This document shows, piece by piece, positions 6,444 through 24,400 of a DNA stretch of 64,000 nt. This DNA is from Macrostomum lignano (taxonomy: Eukaryota), in NCBI GenBank assembly GCA_002269645.1, contig NIVC01001372.1:1-64000 (forward strand), written 5' to 3'. The position numbers were made by a program, and so were the translations under genes. The notes below the pieces were generated by a model. It had not been told where the DNA came from. It saw only the letters and a program-made list of their open reading frames with translations, and searched no databases. The first letter of the stretch is position 1. Every line of letters begins with the position of its first letter.

Positions 6444-9400
6444 CTGAGCGACAGGTGTGCGCGGGTTGATTGATGAGTTTGGTAATTGGCTTTGCTCTGC
6501 TTGTAGCCCCCTTCACAATCATTTTAGTGCCCCTATAAGCTTCTCATGGCGCCTCTATAAGCTACTCATGGGGCTTCTATAAGCTACTCATGGCGCCTCT
6601 ATAAGCTGCTCATGGCGCCCCTATCAGCTACTCATGGCGCATCTATAAGCTACTCATGGCGCATCTATAAGCTACTCATGGCGCATCTATTAGCTACTCA
6701 TGGCGCATCTACAAGCTACTCATGGCGCATCTATAAGCTACTCATGGCGCATCTACAAGCTACTCATGGCGCATCTACAAGCTACTCATGTCGCATCTAC
6801 AAGCTACTCATGGCGCCCCTATCAGCTTGACATCTCGCTCTCTATAAACTCCTTAAGCAATCCCATAACACCTTGTTAGACGAAGCATTCAACTAGCACA
6901 TGCATTTATCGCACAAAGCTCTGCCACTGTCTACTAACAGTAGAAATAAAAGTAAAAAAGCCTCCCAAATAAAAATCAGTGCAGTACTTTTATAGCCAAC
7001 AGTTGCAGCTCTGCATCGCGAGTGATGCCTTCAATGTCGCCGACTGCAATGCCGATCTGCAGTGTGATGAGGGAGTAACGTTTTTTCCATCTTGAATACA
7101 TAAACACACTACTTTTTTCTATTTAGTATGTTAAAATTAGTGGGAAAAATCTCACCAACAAGTTCATCAGCGCAATCGGCATGATGACTACAAAGGCAGT
7201 GAAGACGCATTGTACGGCAGTCTGAAAGCTGCCGTAATCAGCCGTAACAAAGTACGTGACGAACTCCAGCTCGCCGACTGTCATGTCGAATGTCTTCAGT
7301 ATGGCGTAGGGCACCGTGCTGAAGGGCGTCTGGAGACGTTTGGGGACGAGGTGGCTGTCGATTAATGAAAAAACAAACTAATCAATCAATCAATCAATCA
7401 ATCAATCAATCAATCAATCAATCAATCAATCAATCAATCAATCAATCAATCAATCAACCAACGAACCAATCAATCAATCAATCAATCAATCAATCAACCA
7501 ACGAACCAATCAATCAATCAATCAATCAATCAATCAATCAACCAACGAACCAATCAATCAATCAATCAATCAATCAATCAATCAATCAATCAATCAATCA
7601 ATCAATCAATCAATCAATCAATCAATTAATCAATCAATCAATCAATCAGTCAGTCAATCAATCAATCAATCAGTCAATCAATCAATCAATCAATCAATCA
7701 ATCAATCAATCAATCAATCAATCAGTCAGTCAATCAATCAATCAATCAGTCAATCAATCAATCAATCAATCAATCAATCAATCAATCAATCAATCAATCA
7801 ATCAATCAATCAATCAATTAATTAATCAATCAATCAATCAGTCAATCAATCAATCAATCAATCAATCAATCAATCAATCAGTCAATCAATCAGTCAATCA
7901 ATCAATCAATCAGTCAATCAATCAATCAATCAGTCAATCAATCAATCTATCAATCAATCAGTGTACATGCCTGCCGATTTTTGAAGAGCCACTGTACACC
8001 CTGTGTGAGCGTGGTCTCGCATGGTTTCAGGGTGTTGTTTAGCAGTGGTTTTACGGAGTGTTGTTTAGGGTACTGTCAGGGGCGTCACCACCTAAGAGAA
8101 CAGGGGCCGGTGGTGCATGCCCTTCCCCCCCCCCCAGTAAAAGCTATGGGGAACATGCCATTGCTTTGTCCCCCACCCAACTTGTGACCGTTGTGGGAAT
8201 CAATAATTTGGCTTCAGGCCGCTAAAATGAGTGTCTGCCTACCGGCGCCAAAATGAATGCCTGAGGGCGTTCTCAAAACAGCGGTTCTCAAAATAATGTA
8301 CGTGTAGGAGTTTAGTCATGCGAGTTCATGTAGAATTTTTGGCTTTGTCCCCCCCCCCACCATAAAATTCATGGCGACACCCTGGGTACTGTTTAAGCAT
8401 GCTATTTTCGGTTCAGTTGGCCACTCACCGAAGATCTCATGCTGGAATAAAATGCCATAGCGAAGGCCATAATGAAAAAGCAGAAGATGAGCAGCACTTT
8501 GACAAGCGAGGCCAACACTTTTTGAAACATCAGCGAGTACAGACCGGTGAATGATACGCTGAAATTAATCGGTTGTTCAACTGGATGATAGAGGGGAGCA
8601 AATCCAGCTGAGGTTTGCTCGAAATTCTCAATTTGCCTCTCACCACAGCTTGAGTAAAACAGCTTCCTAGTTTCAGTTCAGTAGCATAGAAGAATAGATA
8701 AGCTATTTTATAAAAGTAAAGCCAGATTTGATAAGTTTAGAAGCCCAAGCTTGCAGGCGTAAACAGCTTGCTAATTGGTTCAGCAATAATGTACATTGGC
8801 CAGTCCACTGAAATGTACATGGCAGAATTCCGAGAAAGGCAATAAAAATTGGGGCGGGCGGGGGTAGTGGGAAAGGCGCGGTTGGCGGGTTTAAGCTGGG
8901 GGGGGGTAAGAGCCAATAAATGACCCTTTGCTGTAATTCTGAAATGCTTCTGTTTAACTCACTACTGAACTGAAAGTAGCTTACATGCAAATTTGCCGAG
9001 TGGCCCATCTAGCCGGATATAGTTATTCTAGTATCTGTGGTAATTGTTAACAATTTTATGATTTTATGACTCGATTTGCCTCACCACTCGATCTGGAACA
9101 GCACCAGAGACCAGGCCAGCACGATGGACACCAGCCCGAACATCCAGTTCCACATGCACGGCTCCGAGTCCGGCGGGTACATGAACAGGAAGGTCGAGAA
9201 GTACAGGCTCAGGTAGAAGTACACCTCGATGCTCATGAAGTAGGACAGGCGCTGAAAGAGTTGTTGGGGAGGCCAGGAGTCATTTGCATCTTATCTCTAC
9301 TTGTCTCATTACATCCAATCTCCCCTCATCTCATCTCATCTAATCTTATCTAATCTAATCTCATCTTACCTAATCTCATCTCATCTTATCTCATCTCATC

Positions 9401-21400: not shown

Positions 21401-24400
21401 GTTAAGATTTGGCGCTTTTCACTGTTTAGATTTGGCGCTCTTCACTGTTAAGATTTGGCGCTTTTCACTGTTTAGATTTGGCGCTCTTCACTGTTTAGAT
21501 TTGGCGCTCTTCACTGTTTAGATTTGGTGGCCTTCACTGTTTAGATTTGGCGCCCTTCACTGTTTAGATTTGGCGCCCATCACTGTTTAGATTTGGTACC
21601 ATTAAAAGTTAGATTTGGCGCTCTTCACTGTTTAGATTTGGCGCCTTCACTGTTTAGATTTGGCAGCCTTCACTGTTTAGATTTGGTGCCCTTCACTGTT
21701 TAGATTTGGTGCCCTTCACTGTTTAGAGTTGGCGGCCTTCACTGTTTAGATTTGGCGCCCTTCACTGTTTAGATTTGGTGCCTTTCACTGTTTAGATTTG
21801 GCGCCCTTCACTGTTTAGATTTAGCGCCCTTCGCCCACTGTTTAGATTTGGCGCTTTTCACTGTTTAGATTTGGCGCCCATCACTGTTTAGATTTGGCGC
21901 CCTTCACTGTTTAGATTTGGCGCCCATCACTGTTTAGATTTGGTACCATTAAAATTTAGATTTGGCGCCCTTCACTGCTTAGATTTGGCGCCCTTCACTG
22001 TTTAGATTTGGCGCCCTTCACTGTTTAGATTTGGCGCCCTTCACTGTTTAGATTTGGCGGCCTTCACTGTTGAGATTTGGCGGCCTTCACTGTTTAGATT
22101 TGGTGACCTTCACTGTTTAGATTTGGCGGCCTTCACTGTTTAGATTTGGCGCTCTTCACTGTTTAGATTTGGCGCCCTTCACTGTTTAGATTTGGCGCCC
22201 TTCACTGTTTAGATTTGGCGCCCTTCACTGTTTAGATTTGGCGCCCTTCACTGTTTAGATTTGGCGGCCTTCACTGTTGAGATTTGGCGGCCTTCACTGT
22301 TTAGATTTGGTGACCTTCACTGTTTAGATTTGGCGGCCTTCACTGTTTAGATTTTACGCCCTACAGTTAAGCCCTTCCAATGCTTAGATTGTTTTTAGAT
22401 TCACCGCTTATAGATTCAAAACCTATATGGTCTAGATTTAGCTTCTAACAGTCTATAGATTTAGCCTCTAACAGTCTATAGATTTAGCCTCTAACAGTCT
22501 ATAGATTTAGCCTCTAACAGTCTATAGATTTAGCCTCTAACAGTCTATAGATTTAGCCTCTAACAGTCTATAGATCTAGCCTCTAACAGTCTATAGATCT
22601 AGCCTCTAACAGTCTATAGATTTAGCCTCTAACAGTCTATAGATTTAGCCTCTAACAGTCTATAGATTTAGCCTCTAACAGTCTATAGATCTAGCCTCTA
22701 ACAGTCTATAGATTTAGCCTCTAACAGTCTATAGATTTAGCCTCTAACAGTCTATAGATTTAGCCTCTAGCCTCTATTTAGCTCGATCGATGCCAATAAA
22801 ATCGAGTCATCACCATTCCAGCCGAAGTGTTCCTGCAGCCCTGCTCGTCCATTTCAGTTGGACGCAACGGTCCCTGGTCCATCACAAATATTGTCAGACA
22901 GGTCAGGAACAGCACGTAGAATATGAGGTCCACCAGCAGCGAGGTGATAGCGAATTTAGTCCTGAAATTGTTCACTCAGAACTGCTATTTTTTTTTGGTT
23001 GGACTGATGGACACCCCTGATTGTTGATGGACACCCCTGATTATTAATGACACCCTTGATTATTGATGGACACCCTGATTATTGATGGACACCCTGATTA
23101 TTGATGGACACCCTGATTATTGATGGACACCCCTGATTATTGATGGACACCCCTGATTATTGATGGACACCCCTGATTACTGATGGAAACCCCTGATTGT
23201 TGATGGACACCCCTGATTGTTGATGGACACCCCTGATTATTGATGGACACCCTGATTATTGATGGACACCCTGATTATTGATGGACGTCTCTTGATTCTC
23301 AGTGGACACCCCTGGCCCTGATTCTTACTGGACACCCCTGATTGTTGATGGACACCCTGATTATTGATGGACGTCTCTTGATTCTCAGTGGACACCCCTG
23401 GCCCTGATTCTTACTGGACACCCCTGATTCTCAGTGGACACCTTTGATTCTTAGTGGACAACCTTGATTCTTAGTGGACACCCCTGGTTTTTAGCTGATG
23501 ATTAATCAACCGGAAAAGACACTTCTAGCTCAGTCACGCACCACTTCTCCTGCATAACAGCAGAAGACAGAGGATGCTTCAGCAAGTCCAGCTGCTTGAA
23601 TCGAGCCATAGTCATCAGAGCCAGGTAGCGATGAGGCTGAGAGGCTGGATCGTCTGGTCCAGGATCGATTAGGGAGTAGTTGTAGATTACCTAAAAATGA
23701 AAGGATACAATTATGGTGTACTGGTTGCATGGGTGTATAATGTCCTCTCCCCTCTCCTCTGTCTTCTCTTCTCTCTCATCACTCCTCTCTCTCTTCTCTC
23801 CTCTCTACGAACTACAATGCTTAAATATGCTCAATAATTTTAAGAAAATAGTTTCAACTTTACGGCAAAGTTCTTGTCCATCGGATCCCGGACTGTAGTG
23901 CTGATGCCGTAGTCAAGAACTTTCTGAATGGGTGGGTGCCATGATGACCGATGAGCGAATTTTAAAACATTAAAAGTACATTTGACTGCAAAAAGGCTGT
24001 GACGTTGATTGCGTAAAGTAGAACTGGAATACCGTGGCAAACTCGAGCGAATGCTCAATCAGCTTGTCCATGTGGGTCCTGCCGTTCTCTCGTCTGTAGG
24101 CCATGGTCCACGACCAGCTGCAGGAATTAGATAGAAGGATAGATAGATAGATAGATAGATAGATAGATAGATAGATAGATAGATAGATAGATAGATAGAT
24201 AGATAGATAGATAGATAGAGATAGATAGATGGATAGATAGATAGATAGTGGATAGATAGAGATAGATAGATAGATAGATAGATAGATAGATAGATAGATA
24301 GATAGATATATAGATAGATAGATAGATAGATAGATAGATAGATAGATAGATAGATAGATAGTAGATAGCGAGAAAGAGCGAGCGAAGCGAGCTCTTTCGA

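Follow-up and report, generated by a model that had tools for sequence, protein, structure and literature searches.

A putative partial tandem duplication of the channel module within a TRPA1-like gene in the Macrostomum lignano reference assembly

Intragenic partial tandem duplications formed by FoSTeS/MMBIR, such as out-of-frame exon duplications of DMD or the KMT2A partial tandem duplication, are the closest described counterparts of the locus reported here. Like them, it repeats an internal run of exons head-to-tail within one gene, with breakpoints in introns, microhomologies of 2-3 nt and a short templated insert from nearby, and exon phase decides between an elongated and a truncated product; unlike them, it comes from a flatworm reference assembly alone, includes an expanded 272-bp array and is a mosaic of identical and ~1% diverged tracts. 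TPC and four-domain Nav/Cav channels are thought to have arisen when a 6-TM unit was duplicated within its gene, and our locus likewise doubles a complete S1-S6 module whose in-frame concatenation is arithmetically possible; in contrast with those channels, its default frame is broken, its modules are identical rather than specialised, and it is known from genomic sequence alone. Moreover, TRPA1 assembly depends on the C-terminal coiled coil, which a two-module TRPA would carry only once per two modules. A further counterpart is the false heterotype duplication of genome assemblies, of which false exon gains are a described consequence (PMC9516828): the locus shares with it adjacent near-identical part-gene copies, a multi-haplovariant genome and divergence that appears to be of haplovariant order, but has no gap, no shared end repeat and what reads as a mutational signature at the joint.

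The window that we analysed, positions 1-64,000 of contig NIVC01001372.1 in the M. lignano assembly Mlig_3_7 (GCA_002269645.1), contains a TRPA1-like gene on the minus strand. Reading frames, splice sites and ankyrin periodicity guided the manual construction of its model, the first coding exon being the least certain; false exons from automatic chaining (one within the 272-bp unit, one in a 32-nt minisatellite) were dropped on the same grounds. As a preliminary description of this DNA had stated, ankyrin and C-terminal exons are single copy around a doubled channel module:

25716..30599, minus strand: single-copy ankyrin-repeat exons, from frames, splice sites, ankyrin periodicity and UniProt fragment P0007; exons 30599-30390, 30080-29706, 29330-29226, 29137-29017, 28932-28832, 28401-28277, 27529-27481, 27310-27029, 26656-26406, 26069-25958, 25885-25716
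18098..24202, minus strand: upstream copy of the duplicated block (first in gene order), pre-S1 linker through S6, from self-alignment and homology to TRPA1 structures; exons 24117-24033, 23923-23864, 23690-23542, 22961-22814, 21198-21154, 21073-20972, 20401-20235, 19706-19577, 18573-18400, 18299-18231
6855..13152, minus strand: downstream copy, ten exons, from self-alignment; exons 13076-12992 (the 85-nt exon), 12882-12823, 12649-12501, 11920-11773, 10157-10113, 10032-9931, 9251-9085, 8558-8429, 7329-7156, 7056-6988
6443-6205, minus strand: single-copy C-terminal exon, TRP-like region (INLIYEVE...VYPN)
4341-4272, minus strand: single-copy C-terminal exon, end of the coiled coil and then the stop

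The last ankyrin exon (25885-25716) ends with the codon bases TA, completed by C to Tyr, and the resulting SEQ-Y-WSW splice into the module is confirmed by fragment P0007. The normal product of this gene model is 1112 aa long, or 1097 aa without a microexon. In the 1097-aa model, an N-terminal ankyrin-repeat domain was recognised by Pfam Ank_2, Ank, Ank_4 and Ank_5 (E = 4e-90 to 2e-48), and Pfam Ion_trans did not reach E <= 0.001. The top phmmer matches of the 6-TM module in PDB were all TRPA1 (4e-32 to 4e-26; 7ykr 4e-32, 6v9v 2.5e-26), with query positions 15-360 aligned to residues 622-978 of 6v9v, and TRPV matches were far weaker. The gene shares with Drosophila (7ykr) and human (6v9v) TRPA1 the ankyrin N-terminus, a 6-TM core that aligns from pre-S1 to the S6 gate, the TRP-like segment and a short C-terminal helix, but differs from them in its low sequence conservation; its closest relatives in a representative-protein search (best 150 of 1711) were 29-36% identical. 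Judged by these similarities, it is a divergent flatworm TRPA1-like paralogue.

A 115-aa chimeric query at 1e-10 returned no match, the cut-off being too strict; a 464-aa query at 1e-3, used instead, retrieved an M. lignano UniProt model of the gene that is identical save for the microexon, which is itself also present in UniProt models. The older M. lignano proteome contains the diverged paralogues P0006 and P0008 and several identical fragments. Among database models none of the gene was full-length and none contained the C-terminal exon. Three UniProt models end in ...LLAIKVLH followed by a stop, reading past the donor of the last module exon; we rejected them as support for a non-canonical downstream context because the C-terminal exon is absent from every database model and the predictor simply missed it. 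A search of the literature on Macrostomum TRPA1 found nothing on this gene.

Comparison of the window with itself by blastn, together with global alignment, placed a 6.3-kb block at 6855-13152 and again, head-to-tail, at 18098-24202, with no N gap in the whole window. The preliminary description had reported nine exons (1084 nt) present twice with valid splice sites. The duplication and the AG/GT borders of both copies held up; each copy, though, has ten exons summing to 1129 nt (1 mod 3) once a 45-nt microexon is counted (15 aa; 10157-10113 and 21198-21154, bordered by TTTTCAG and GTAAGC), and what is doubled is the whole genomic block, introns and minisatellites as well as exons. The copies show one exonic difference, which is synonymous, and encode identical peptides. 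Divergence between them is unevenly distributed:

9856..13152, unstranded: identical tract, zero differences from 20897-24193 despite more than 2 kb of minisatellites
9742..9855, unstranded: 114-nt indel, in the downstream copy only, at the border of the diverged and identical parts

At the rate of the adjoining region, zero differences over the 3.3-kb identical tract would have P = 1e-13. That adjoining diverged part (6855-9741) holds 17 SNPs outside an AATC microsatellite (0.9%), as well as indels and changes in microsatellite length; 14 of the 17 are transitions and 3 transversions, so the differences are taken as true mutations rather than read errors, and as a sign that the copies are two distinct, genuine sequences. 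Exons differ at 1/540 nt vs 16/1766 nt in introns, a contrast that is not significant (Fisher p = 0.14), and purifying selection on both copies was dropped as evidence for that reason.

The copies are separated by a tandem array that ends in a short templated junction:

13153..18080, unstranded: 4.9-kb array of 18.1 perfectly identical 272-bp units, between the copies and inside the inter-module intron
18078..18099, unstranded: duplication junction, with a 22-nt insert that matches S5-exon sequence exactly
8505..8526, unstranded: source of the insert, within the S5 exon; twin site in the other copy 19653-19674
24361..24658, unstranded: single-copy state of the 272-bp unit (1.09 units) between GATA microsatellites, upstream of the first module

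The single-copy unit is 96.7% identical to the array unit (3.3% different), and the window's other arrays have 86-99% matches vs the perfect 272-bp array. No Rfam family was found anywhere in the 64-kb window, so the 272-bp unit corresponds to no known RNA gene. The junction reads GCGAAGCGAGCGAGGCCAACACTTTTTGAAGCAATCCCAT. Its insert shares 3 nt with the array (AGC, 18078-18080) and 2 nt with the start of the copy (AA, 18098-18099), and the S5-exon source of the insert lies 1.6 kb away in direct orientation. The duplication goes far past what chance would produce: for the insert alone, 0 matches are expected in shuffled sequence. Here the 272-bp element, normally upstream of the module, abuts intron sequence 133 nt downstream of the module's last exon. 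The insert and its microhomologies appear to be the signature of replicative template switching; since assemblers join by long overlaps and cannot create a templated insert, the junction is best read as a mutational product and not as an overlap join. Three junction-spanning ORFs were not on record in databases, nor was P0001, and a 30-mer from the shared flank was absent from metagenome contigs; a neighbouring 675-aa ORF was matched only in the source assembly.

The phase at the end of the last module exon is 0 (18231 / 6988), while the 85-nt exon opens with a third codon base. Serial splicing of both blocks (joint ...CTATAAAA/CTGGTCGTGG...) consequently shifts the frame, as the preliminary description had noted, and meets a stop after 20 codons of the second block, giving 1030 aa vs 1112 aa. 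The resulting mRNA is a likely target of NMD because this stop would lie far upstream of many exon junctions; the suggestion of NMD-prone or truncated isoforms thus coincides with the outcome predicted by default from the frames. Skipping 13076-12992 (18231 to 12882) does restore the frame (...CTATAAAA/AAAGTTCTTGAC..., also given as ...GGCTATAAAA/AAAGTTCTTG... for the joint of the last module exon with the second exon of the downstream block), although the product is 1460 aa and not the ~1437 aa first calculated. It requires that the 85-nt exon be kept in the upstream copy and skipped in the downstream copy, and the two are identical, as are their flanks over 77 nt upstream and 3136 nt downstream. 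Because the copies encode identical peptides, any cross-copy splice yields the normal protein, as had been proposed, with 1112 aa replacing the earlier figure of 1104 aa. The blocks encode the same protein and therefore add no diversity; they do not form a mutually exclusive exon cluster, which has diverged exons that change the protein, and constitutive splicing gives no single ORF through two S1-S6 modules. The inter-module intron measures 5154 nt vs 72-1863 nt for every other intron of the gene.

We consider it fairly probable that one redundant gene copy of a neopolyploid genome is disabled or weakened here by a young partial tandem duplication. In the proposed FoSTeS/MMBIR-type template switch, synthesis would have restarted at the intronic 272-bp element upstream of the module, next copied a 22-nt stretch of the S5 exon and then continued from a point 133 nt downstream of the module's last exon, so that the 6.3-kb block with its ten exons, from the pre-S1 linker to S6, was re-copied and the 272-bp element was left as an 18-unit array at the joint. 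Exon-by-exon splicing would then add 1129 nt to the mRNA, and the predicted 1030-aa protein would retain the ankyrin domain and S1-S6 without the TRP-like helix or the C-terminal coiled coil, a loss that three subgenomes and other gene copies may render tolerable. M. lignano is a neopolyploid with three subgenomes (PMC10733133). The diverged paralogues P0006 and P0008 and the identical fragments of the older proteome also speak for redundancy. On this explanation the duplication is an ordinary structural variant with no new channel architecture. If the junction is real, it offers a clean example of how a template-switch duplication breaks one copy of a gene for a sensory channel, and thereby of gene loss as a recent polyploid rediploidises; its exact breakpoint would ease genotyping across M. 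lignano lines. The quality of Mlig_3_7, the position at the start of the contig and the divergence mosaic count against the explanation. Consensus and polishing may have produced the 18 perfect repeat units.

The main competitor, possible though clearly less probable, is an assembly artefact, in which each chromosome carries one module and Canu placed two haplovariants (S, L1 or L2) in tandem, or one sequence twice over, near a contig end, with the 272-bp array and the joint coming from a chimeric or misplaced read. The caution of the preliminary description about mis-joined haplotypes or homeologs was well placed. The genome is neopolyploid and its assembly is documented as error-prone (PMC10733133, PMC5730564). 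Mlig_3_7 was assembled with Canu from PacBio CLR reads, and Pilon was used for polishing. It is documented as redundant, with 180 Mb of duplicated blocks (PMC5730564), and is reported to include chimeric contigs and haplovariants that were expanded or collapsed (PMC5730564, PMC10733133). The duplication is located 7-24 kb from the start of its contig, the spacer array is suspiciously perfect against the 86-99% of the others, and unsupported sequence sometimes serves as a bridge in false duplications (PMC9516828). The divergence of part of the block (0.9% SNPs, indels, microsatellite lengths) resembles that of haplovariants. M. lignano subgenomes diverge by 1.4-2.4% (PMC10733133), and by sequence the 0.9% of 6855-9741 and the 3.3% of the 272-bp unit appear to be of that order, with 0% over 9856-13152; the copy differences could stem from haplovariants. 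The argument that P0006 and P0008 are whole-genome-duplication homeologues and the blocks thus not haplovariants was withdrawn, given subgenomes only 1.4-2.4% apart. A single clean duplication does not predict such a mosaic, which needs gene conversion, a template switch between homologous chromosomes or a mosaic consensus.

Against the artefact, an overlap mis-join needs a repeat common to both block ends, and the flanks are unrelated, with a 22-nt minisatellite (6533-6827) on the left and GATA and the 272-bp unit on the right. The joint is abrupt and unique, and its templated 22-nt insert and microhomologies are what a mutational event would be expected to leave. Moreover, overlap-based trimming in Canu discards junctions present in one read only. 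Gaps, the usual mark of false duplications (PMC9516828), do not occur between the copies. Were the artefact the right reading, NIVC01001372.1:6.8-24.2 kb would be a mis-assembled reference region, misleading for gene annotation.

A real duplication that is silent or regulatory seems improbable. Here the whole block would usually be skipped to give the 1112-aa channel, with the frameshifted form minor and cleared by NMD, and the duplication may be older and homogenised by gene conversion. Cross-copy splices all give the normal protein from identical peptides, the identical/diverged mosaic bounded by indels looks like a gene-conversion tract, and exons differ less than introns, but this last contrast is the non-significant one given above. 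Skipping the block would also mean removing an intron of ~11 kb, far beyond the gene's own 72-1863 nt, and the default expectation is nearest-neighbour splicing. The average intron of the M. lignano genome is 1.1-1.4 kb (PMC5730564).

The preliminary description had further proposed a TRP channel in transition to a two-domain form, for which we found no support: the default frame is broken, the 85-nt exons are identical and so are the peptides. It is very improbable that the duplication is real and that skipping of the downstream 85-nt exon only gives a functional TRPA subunit of ~1460 aa with two tandem domains (12-TM), even though the 18231 to 12882 splice is in frame, the topology is permissible (S6 ends in the cytosol, where the pre-S1 region also lies) and TRP and Kv subunits engineered into concatemers can function, because the exon to be skipped is identical, flanks included, to the one to be kept, the first module would be without its own TRP-like helix and coiled coil, and the second without an ankyrin domain. 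No ANK-[S1-S6]x2-Cterm protein was found among the best 150 of 1711 relatives in 1.84 billion representative proteins, and the long multi-match proteins read among those 150 were fusions of at least two complete subunits. It is simpler to read the locus as a redundant copy that was disrupted, or as an error of assembly, because the genome is neopolyploid, the assembly error-prone, the default product frameshifted and the blocks and exons identical. Only if transcripts carried both modules in frame would the locus bear on the origin of multi-domain cation channels. There is likewise very little chance that the duplication is expressed as a new TRPA product, be it ANK-[S1-S6]x2-Cterm (~1460 aa) or two complementary half-products, which could be an ankyrin domain plus channel without the C-terminus and an ankyrin-less channel starting at a Met in the 85-nt exon (MAYRRENG...). 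As context for such half-products, M. lignano is heavily trans-spliced.

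Self-alignment of the window (blastn) showed that 6855-13152 recurs at 18098-24202, inside a TRPA1-like gene on the minus strand, and global alignment of the two blocks was used to list all their differences. Nine exons of 85, 60, 149, 148, 102, 167, 130, 174, and 69 nt (1084 nt in total), reported as duplicated in the preliminary description, were found in both copies with AG/GT borders at every exon; they differ by a single synonymous base and encode an identical 361-residue translation. Alignment of this peptide with solved structures of TRPA1 starts in the pre-S1 region and reaches the S6 gate (human 6v9v: residues 15-360 of the query versus 622-978, E = 2.5e-26; Drosophila 7ykr: E = 4e-32; TRPV matches were much weaker), and the module had therefore been described correctly as a TRPA segment running from the coupling domain to S6. 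The count of nine, however, had missed an in-frame 45-nt microexon with strong splice sites (10157-10113 and 21198-21154, minus strand), located between the S1 exon and the one that follows, and encoding 15 residues that include an N-x-T site. UniProt A0A1I8HFV5 (M. lignano; 464-aa query) corresponds exactly to the module except for 15 additional residues, and the microexon residues are present in both A0A1I8HFV5 and A0A1I8HFL9; the UniProt fragment P0007 confirmed the microexon as well as the splice of the last ankyrin exon to the 85-nt exon (...SEQ-Y-WSW...). Counting the microexon, the module thus comprises ten exons with a total of 1129 nt, which is 1 mod 3 as before.

An automatic gene model, then corrected by hand, gave the following parts and predicted products:

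30599-25716, minus strand: ankyrin part, eleven exons
Between the ankyrin and C-terminal parts, minus strand: module, ten exons, two copies
6443-6205 and 4341-4272, minus strand: C-terminal part, two exons
Single-module route (normal): predicted product of 1112 aa
Serial splicing of both modules: frameshift with a stop after 20 codons, predicted product of 1030 aa without the TRP-like segment and C-terminal helix
Route skipping only 13076-12992: in frame, predicted product of 1460 aa

The ankyrin repeats were found by Pfam with E-values as low as 4e-90. All three possible joints start from the end of the last module exon, ...GGCTATAAAA, and are predicted to read (slash at the joint) ...GGCTATAAAA/ATCAATCTAA for the normal route, ...GGCTATAAAA/CTGGTCGTGG for serial splicing with frameshift, and ...GGCTATAAAA/AAAGTTCTTG for the in-frame two-domain route. 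The frame arithmetic proposed earlier (frameshift in series, in frame when 13076-12992 is skipped) held in this model, while the proposed lengths of 1104 and 1437 aa were slightly off.

The TRPA1-like gene has no proper annotation in any database searched. At least four partial models in the older M. lignano proteome contain the exact module sequence (P0001, P0007, P0009, and P0010; look-up of P0001 found no record), and two diverged UniProt fragments (P0006 and P0008) show 3-8% amino-acid differences. None of the M. lignano UniProt fragments is full-length or includes the C-terminal exon, and three UniProt fragments end in ...LLAIKVLH*, a read-through of the last module donor. The last intron consists mostly of a 32-nt minisatellite (53 units, 4424-6106) with all three frames open over ~600 codons; an exon picked there by an exon-chaining script was false, the open frames belonging to the minisatellite.

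Judging from the sequence, the gene probably carries a real, young partial tandem duplication, whose default product would be frameshifted, and the signature of the junction favours such an event. The spacer between the blocks (13153-18080) consists of a 272-bp sequence repeated 18.1 times with zero mismatches, and its periodicity stops at 18080. The 22 nt at 18078-18099 reproduce S5-exon sequence exactly (8505-8526 and 19653-19674), and homology to the block start begins at 18098 (= 6855), leaving overlaps of 3 nt (AGC) and 2 nt (AA) at an insert templated from 1.6 kb away, in a head-to-tail joint. A 21-mer of this insert was never matched when the window was shuffled 100 times. Head-to-tail joining, microhomologies, and a short insert templated nearby together make up the textbook signature of replicative template switching (FoSTeS/MMBIR). 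The junction 40-mer is GCGAAGCGAGCGAGGCCAACACTTTTTGAAGCAATCCCAT, and its normal-flank counterpart is ...ATAAACTCCTTAAGCAATCCCATAAC...; look-ups of three junction-spanning ORFs found no record, and the flank common to both copies was not found in the metagenome contigs scanned. Upstream of the first module, the 272-bp unit occurs as 1.09 units (24361-24658) with GATA microsatellites on both sides; this single-state unit shares 96.7% identity with the array unit and bears a 25-nt terminal direct repeat, which would favour slippage. Its 3.3% divergence is the highest in the duplicated region (Fisher p = 0.01 versus the intron rate). The perfection of the array says little on age, because polishing may erase differences between units.

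The two copies are a mosaic. Over 9856-13152 (3297 nt, including >2 kb of minisatellites) there are zero differences, whereas 6855-9741 contains 17 substitutions outside an AATC microsatellite (0.9% in introns), four small indels (three of 1 nt and one of 5 nt), and a microsatellite length difference of 96 nt; the border between the identical and diverged parts is formed by an indel of 114 nt. At the rate of the diverged part, a difference-free 3.3-kb stretch has P = 1e-13. Substitutions were 14 transitions and 3 transversions, and are therefore real mutations rather than read errors; they were fewer in exons than in introns (1/540 versus 16/1766 nt), not significantly (p = 0.14). This pattern is not predicted by one clean recent duplication. 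It fits inter-copy gene conversion whose tracts end at the indels, a template switch involving a homologous chromosome, or a consensus mixing haplovariants.

An assembly error is a less likely but possible explanation of the duplicated block, in keeping with this mosaic and with the location of the duplication, just 7-24 kb into the contig. Assemblers join reads via long overlaps, which do not produce a joint with microhomologies and a templated insert. We also found no repeat common to both block ends that could mislead an assembler: a 22-nt minisatellite lies to the left of the block, and GATA plus the 272-bp unit to the right. The nature of the assembly itself leaves room for an error: M. 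lignano, a polyploid of recent origin, has three subgenomes (S, L1, and L2) with SNP differences of 1.4-2.4% between them, and Mlig_3_7, the assembly to which the window belongs as the first 64 kb of its contig, reportedly contains chimeric sequences as well as haplovariants that were expanded or collapsed in error (PMC10733133); it was built from PacBio CLR reads with Canu 1.4 and Pilon polishing, with 180 Mb of redundant blocks and 15% simple and tandem repeats (PMC5730564). False duplications are usually separated by a gap or unsupported sequence and have half the read depth (PMC9516828); no gap separates the M. lignano copies.

A duplication that is real yet silent or regulatory, with block skipping restoring the normal mRNA, is improbable. 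Least probable is a tandem two-domain TRPA subunit, proposed earlier on the strength of the in-frame route. It would need splicing to include the 85-nt exon of the upstream block while omitting that of the downstream block, but the two exons are identical together with 77 nt of upstream and 3136 nt of downstream flank, so that local sequence offers the spliceosome no means of distinction; their context differs only further upstream (a 1598-nt intron versus a repeat-filled intron of 5154 nt; the M. lignano average is 1.1-1.4 kb, PMC5730564). Moreover, the first module would have no TRP-like helix and coiled coil of its own, and the second no ankyrin domain. A representative-protein search (1.84 billion proteins) gave 1711 relatives, six of which were read: P0131 has a single module, and P0014, P0038, P0073, P0080, and P0156, all long hits matched over several stretches, are head-to-tail fusions of at least two whole subunits, fused models of neighbouring genes. 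None of the six showed a pair of channel modules flanked by a single ankyrin domain and a single C-terminus. The two-domain route is thus arithmetically sound, but such a channel has no natural counterpart among the sequences read and no support here.

Tandem repeats abound in the window, in agreement with the 15% reported for the M. lignano genome; they include two large minisatellite arrays at 51452-52585 (61 nt x 19 units) and 55282-59865 (46 nt x 100 units, 97% matches) and a 177-bp repeat at 33957-34571 (3.5 units, 97% identity) with an open frame on the minus strand. Rfam found no RNA family anywhere in the window. The neighbouring genes include a 675-aa ORF without introns that carries a DUF4209 / EMARD_N domain (41171-43198, plus strand) and a PAP2-family lipid phosphatase exon (50043-50735, plus strand), with a YjeF_N-domain gene from the source record between them; the 675-aa ORF is recorded solely in GCA_002269645.1, NIVC01001372.1, with coordinates as in the window.
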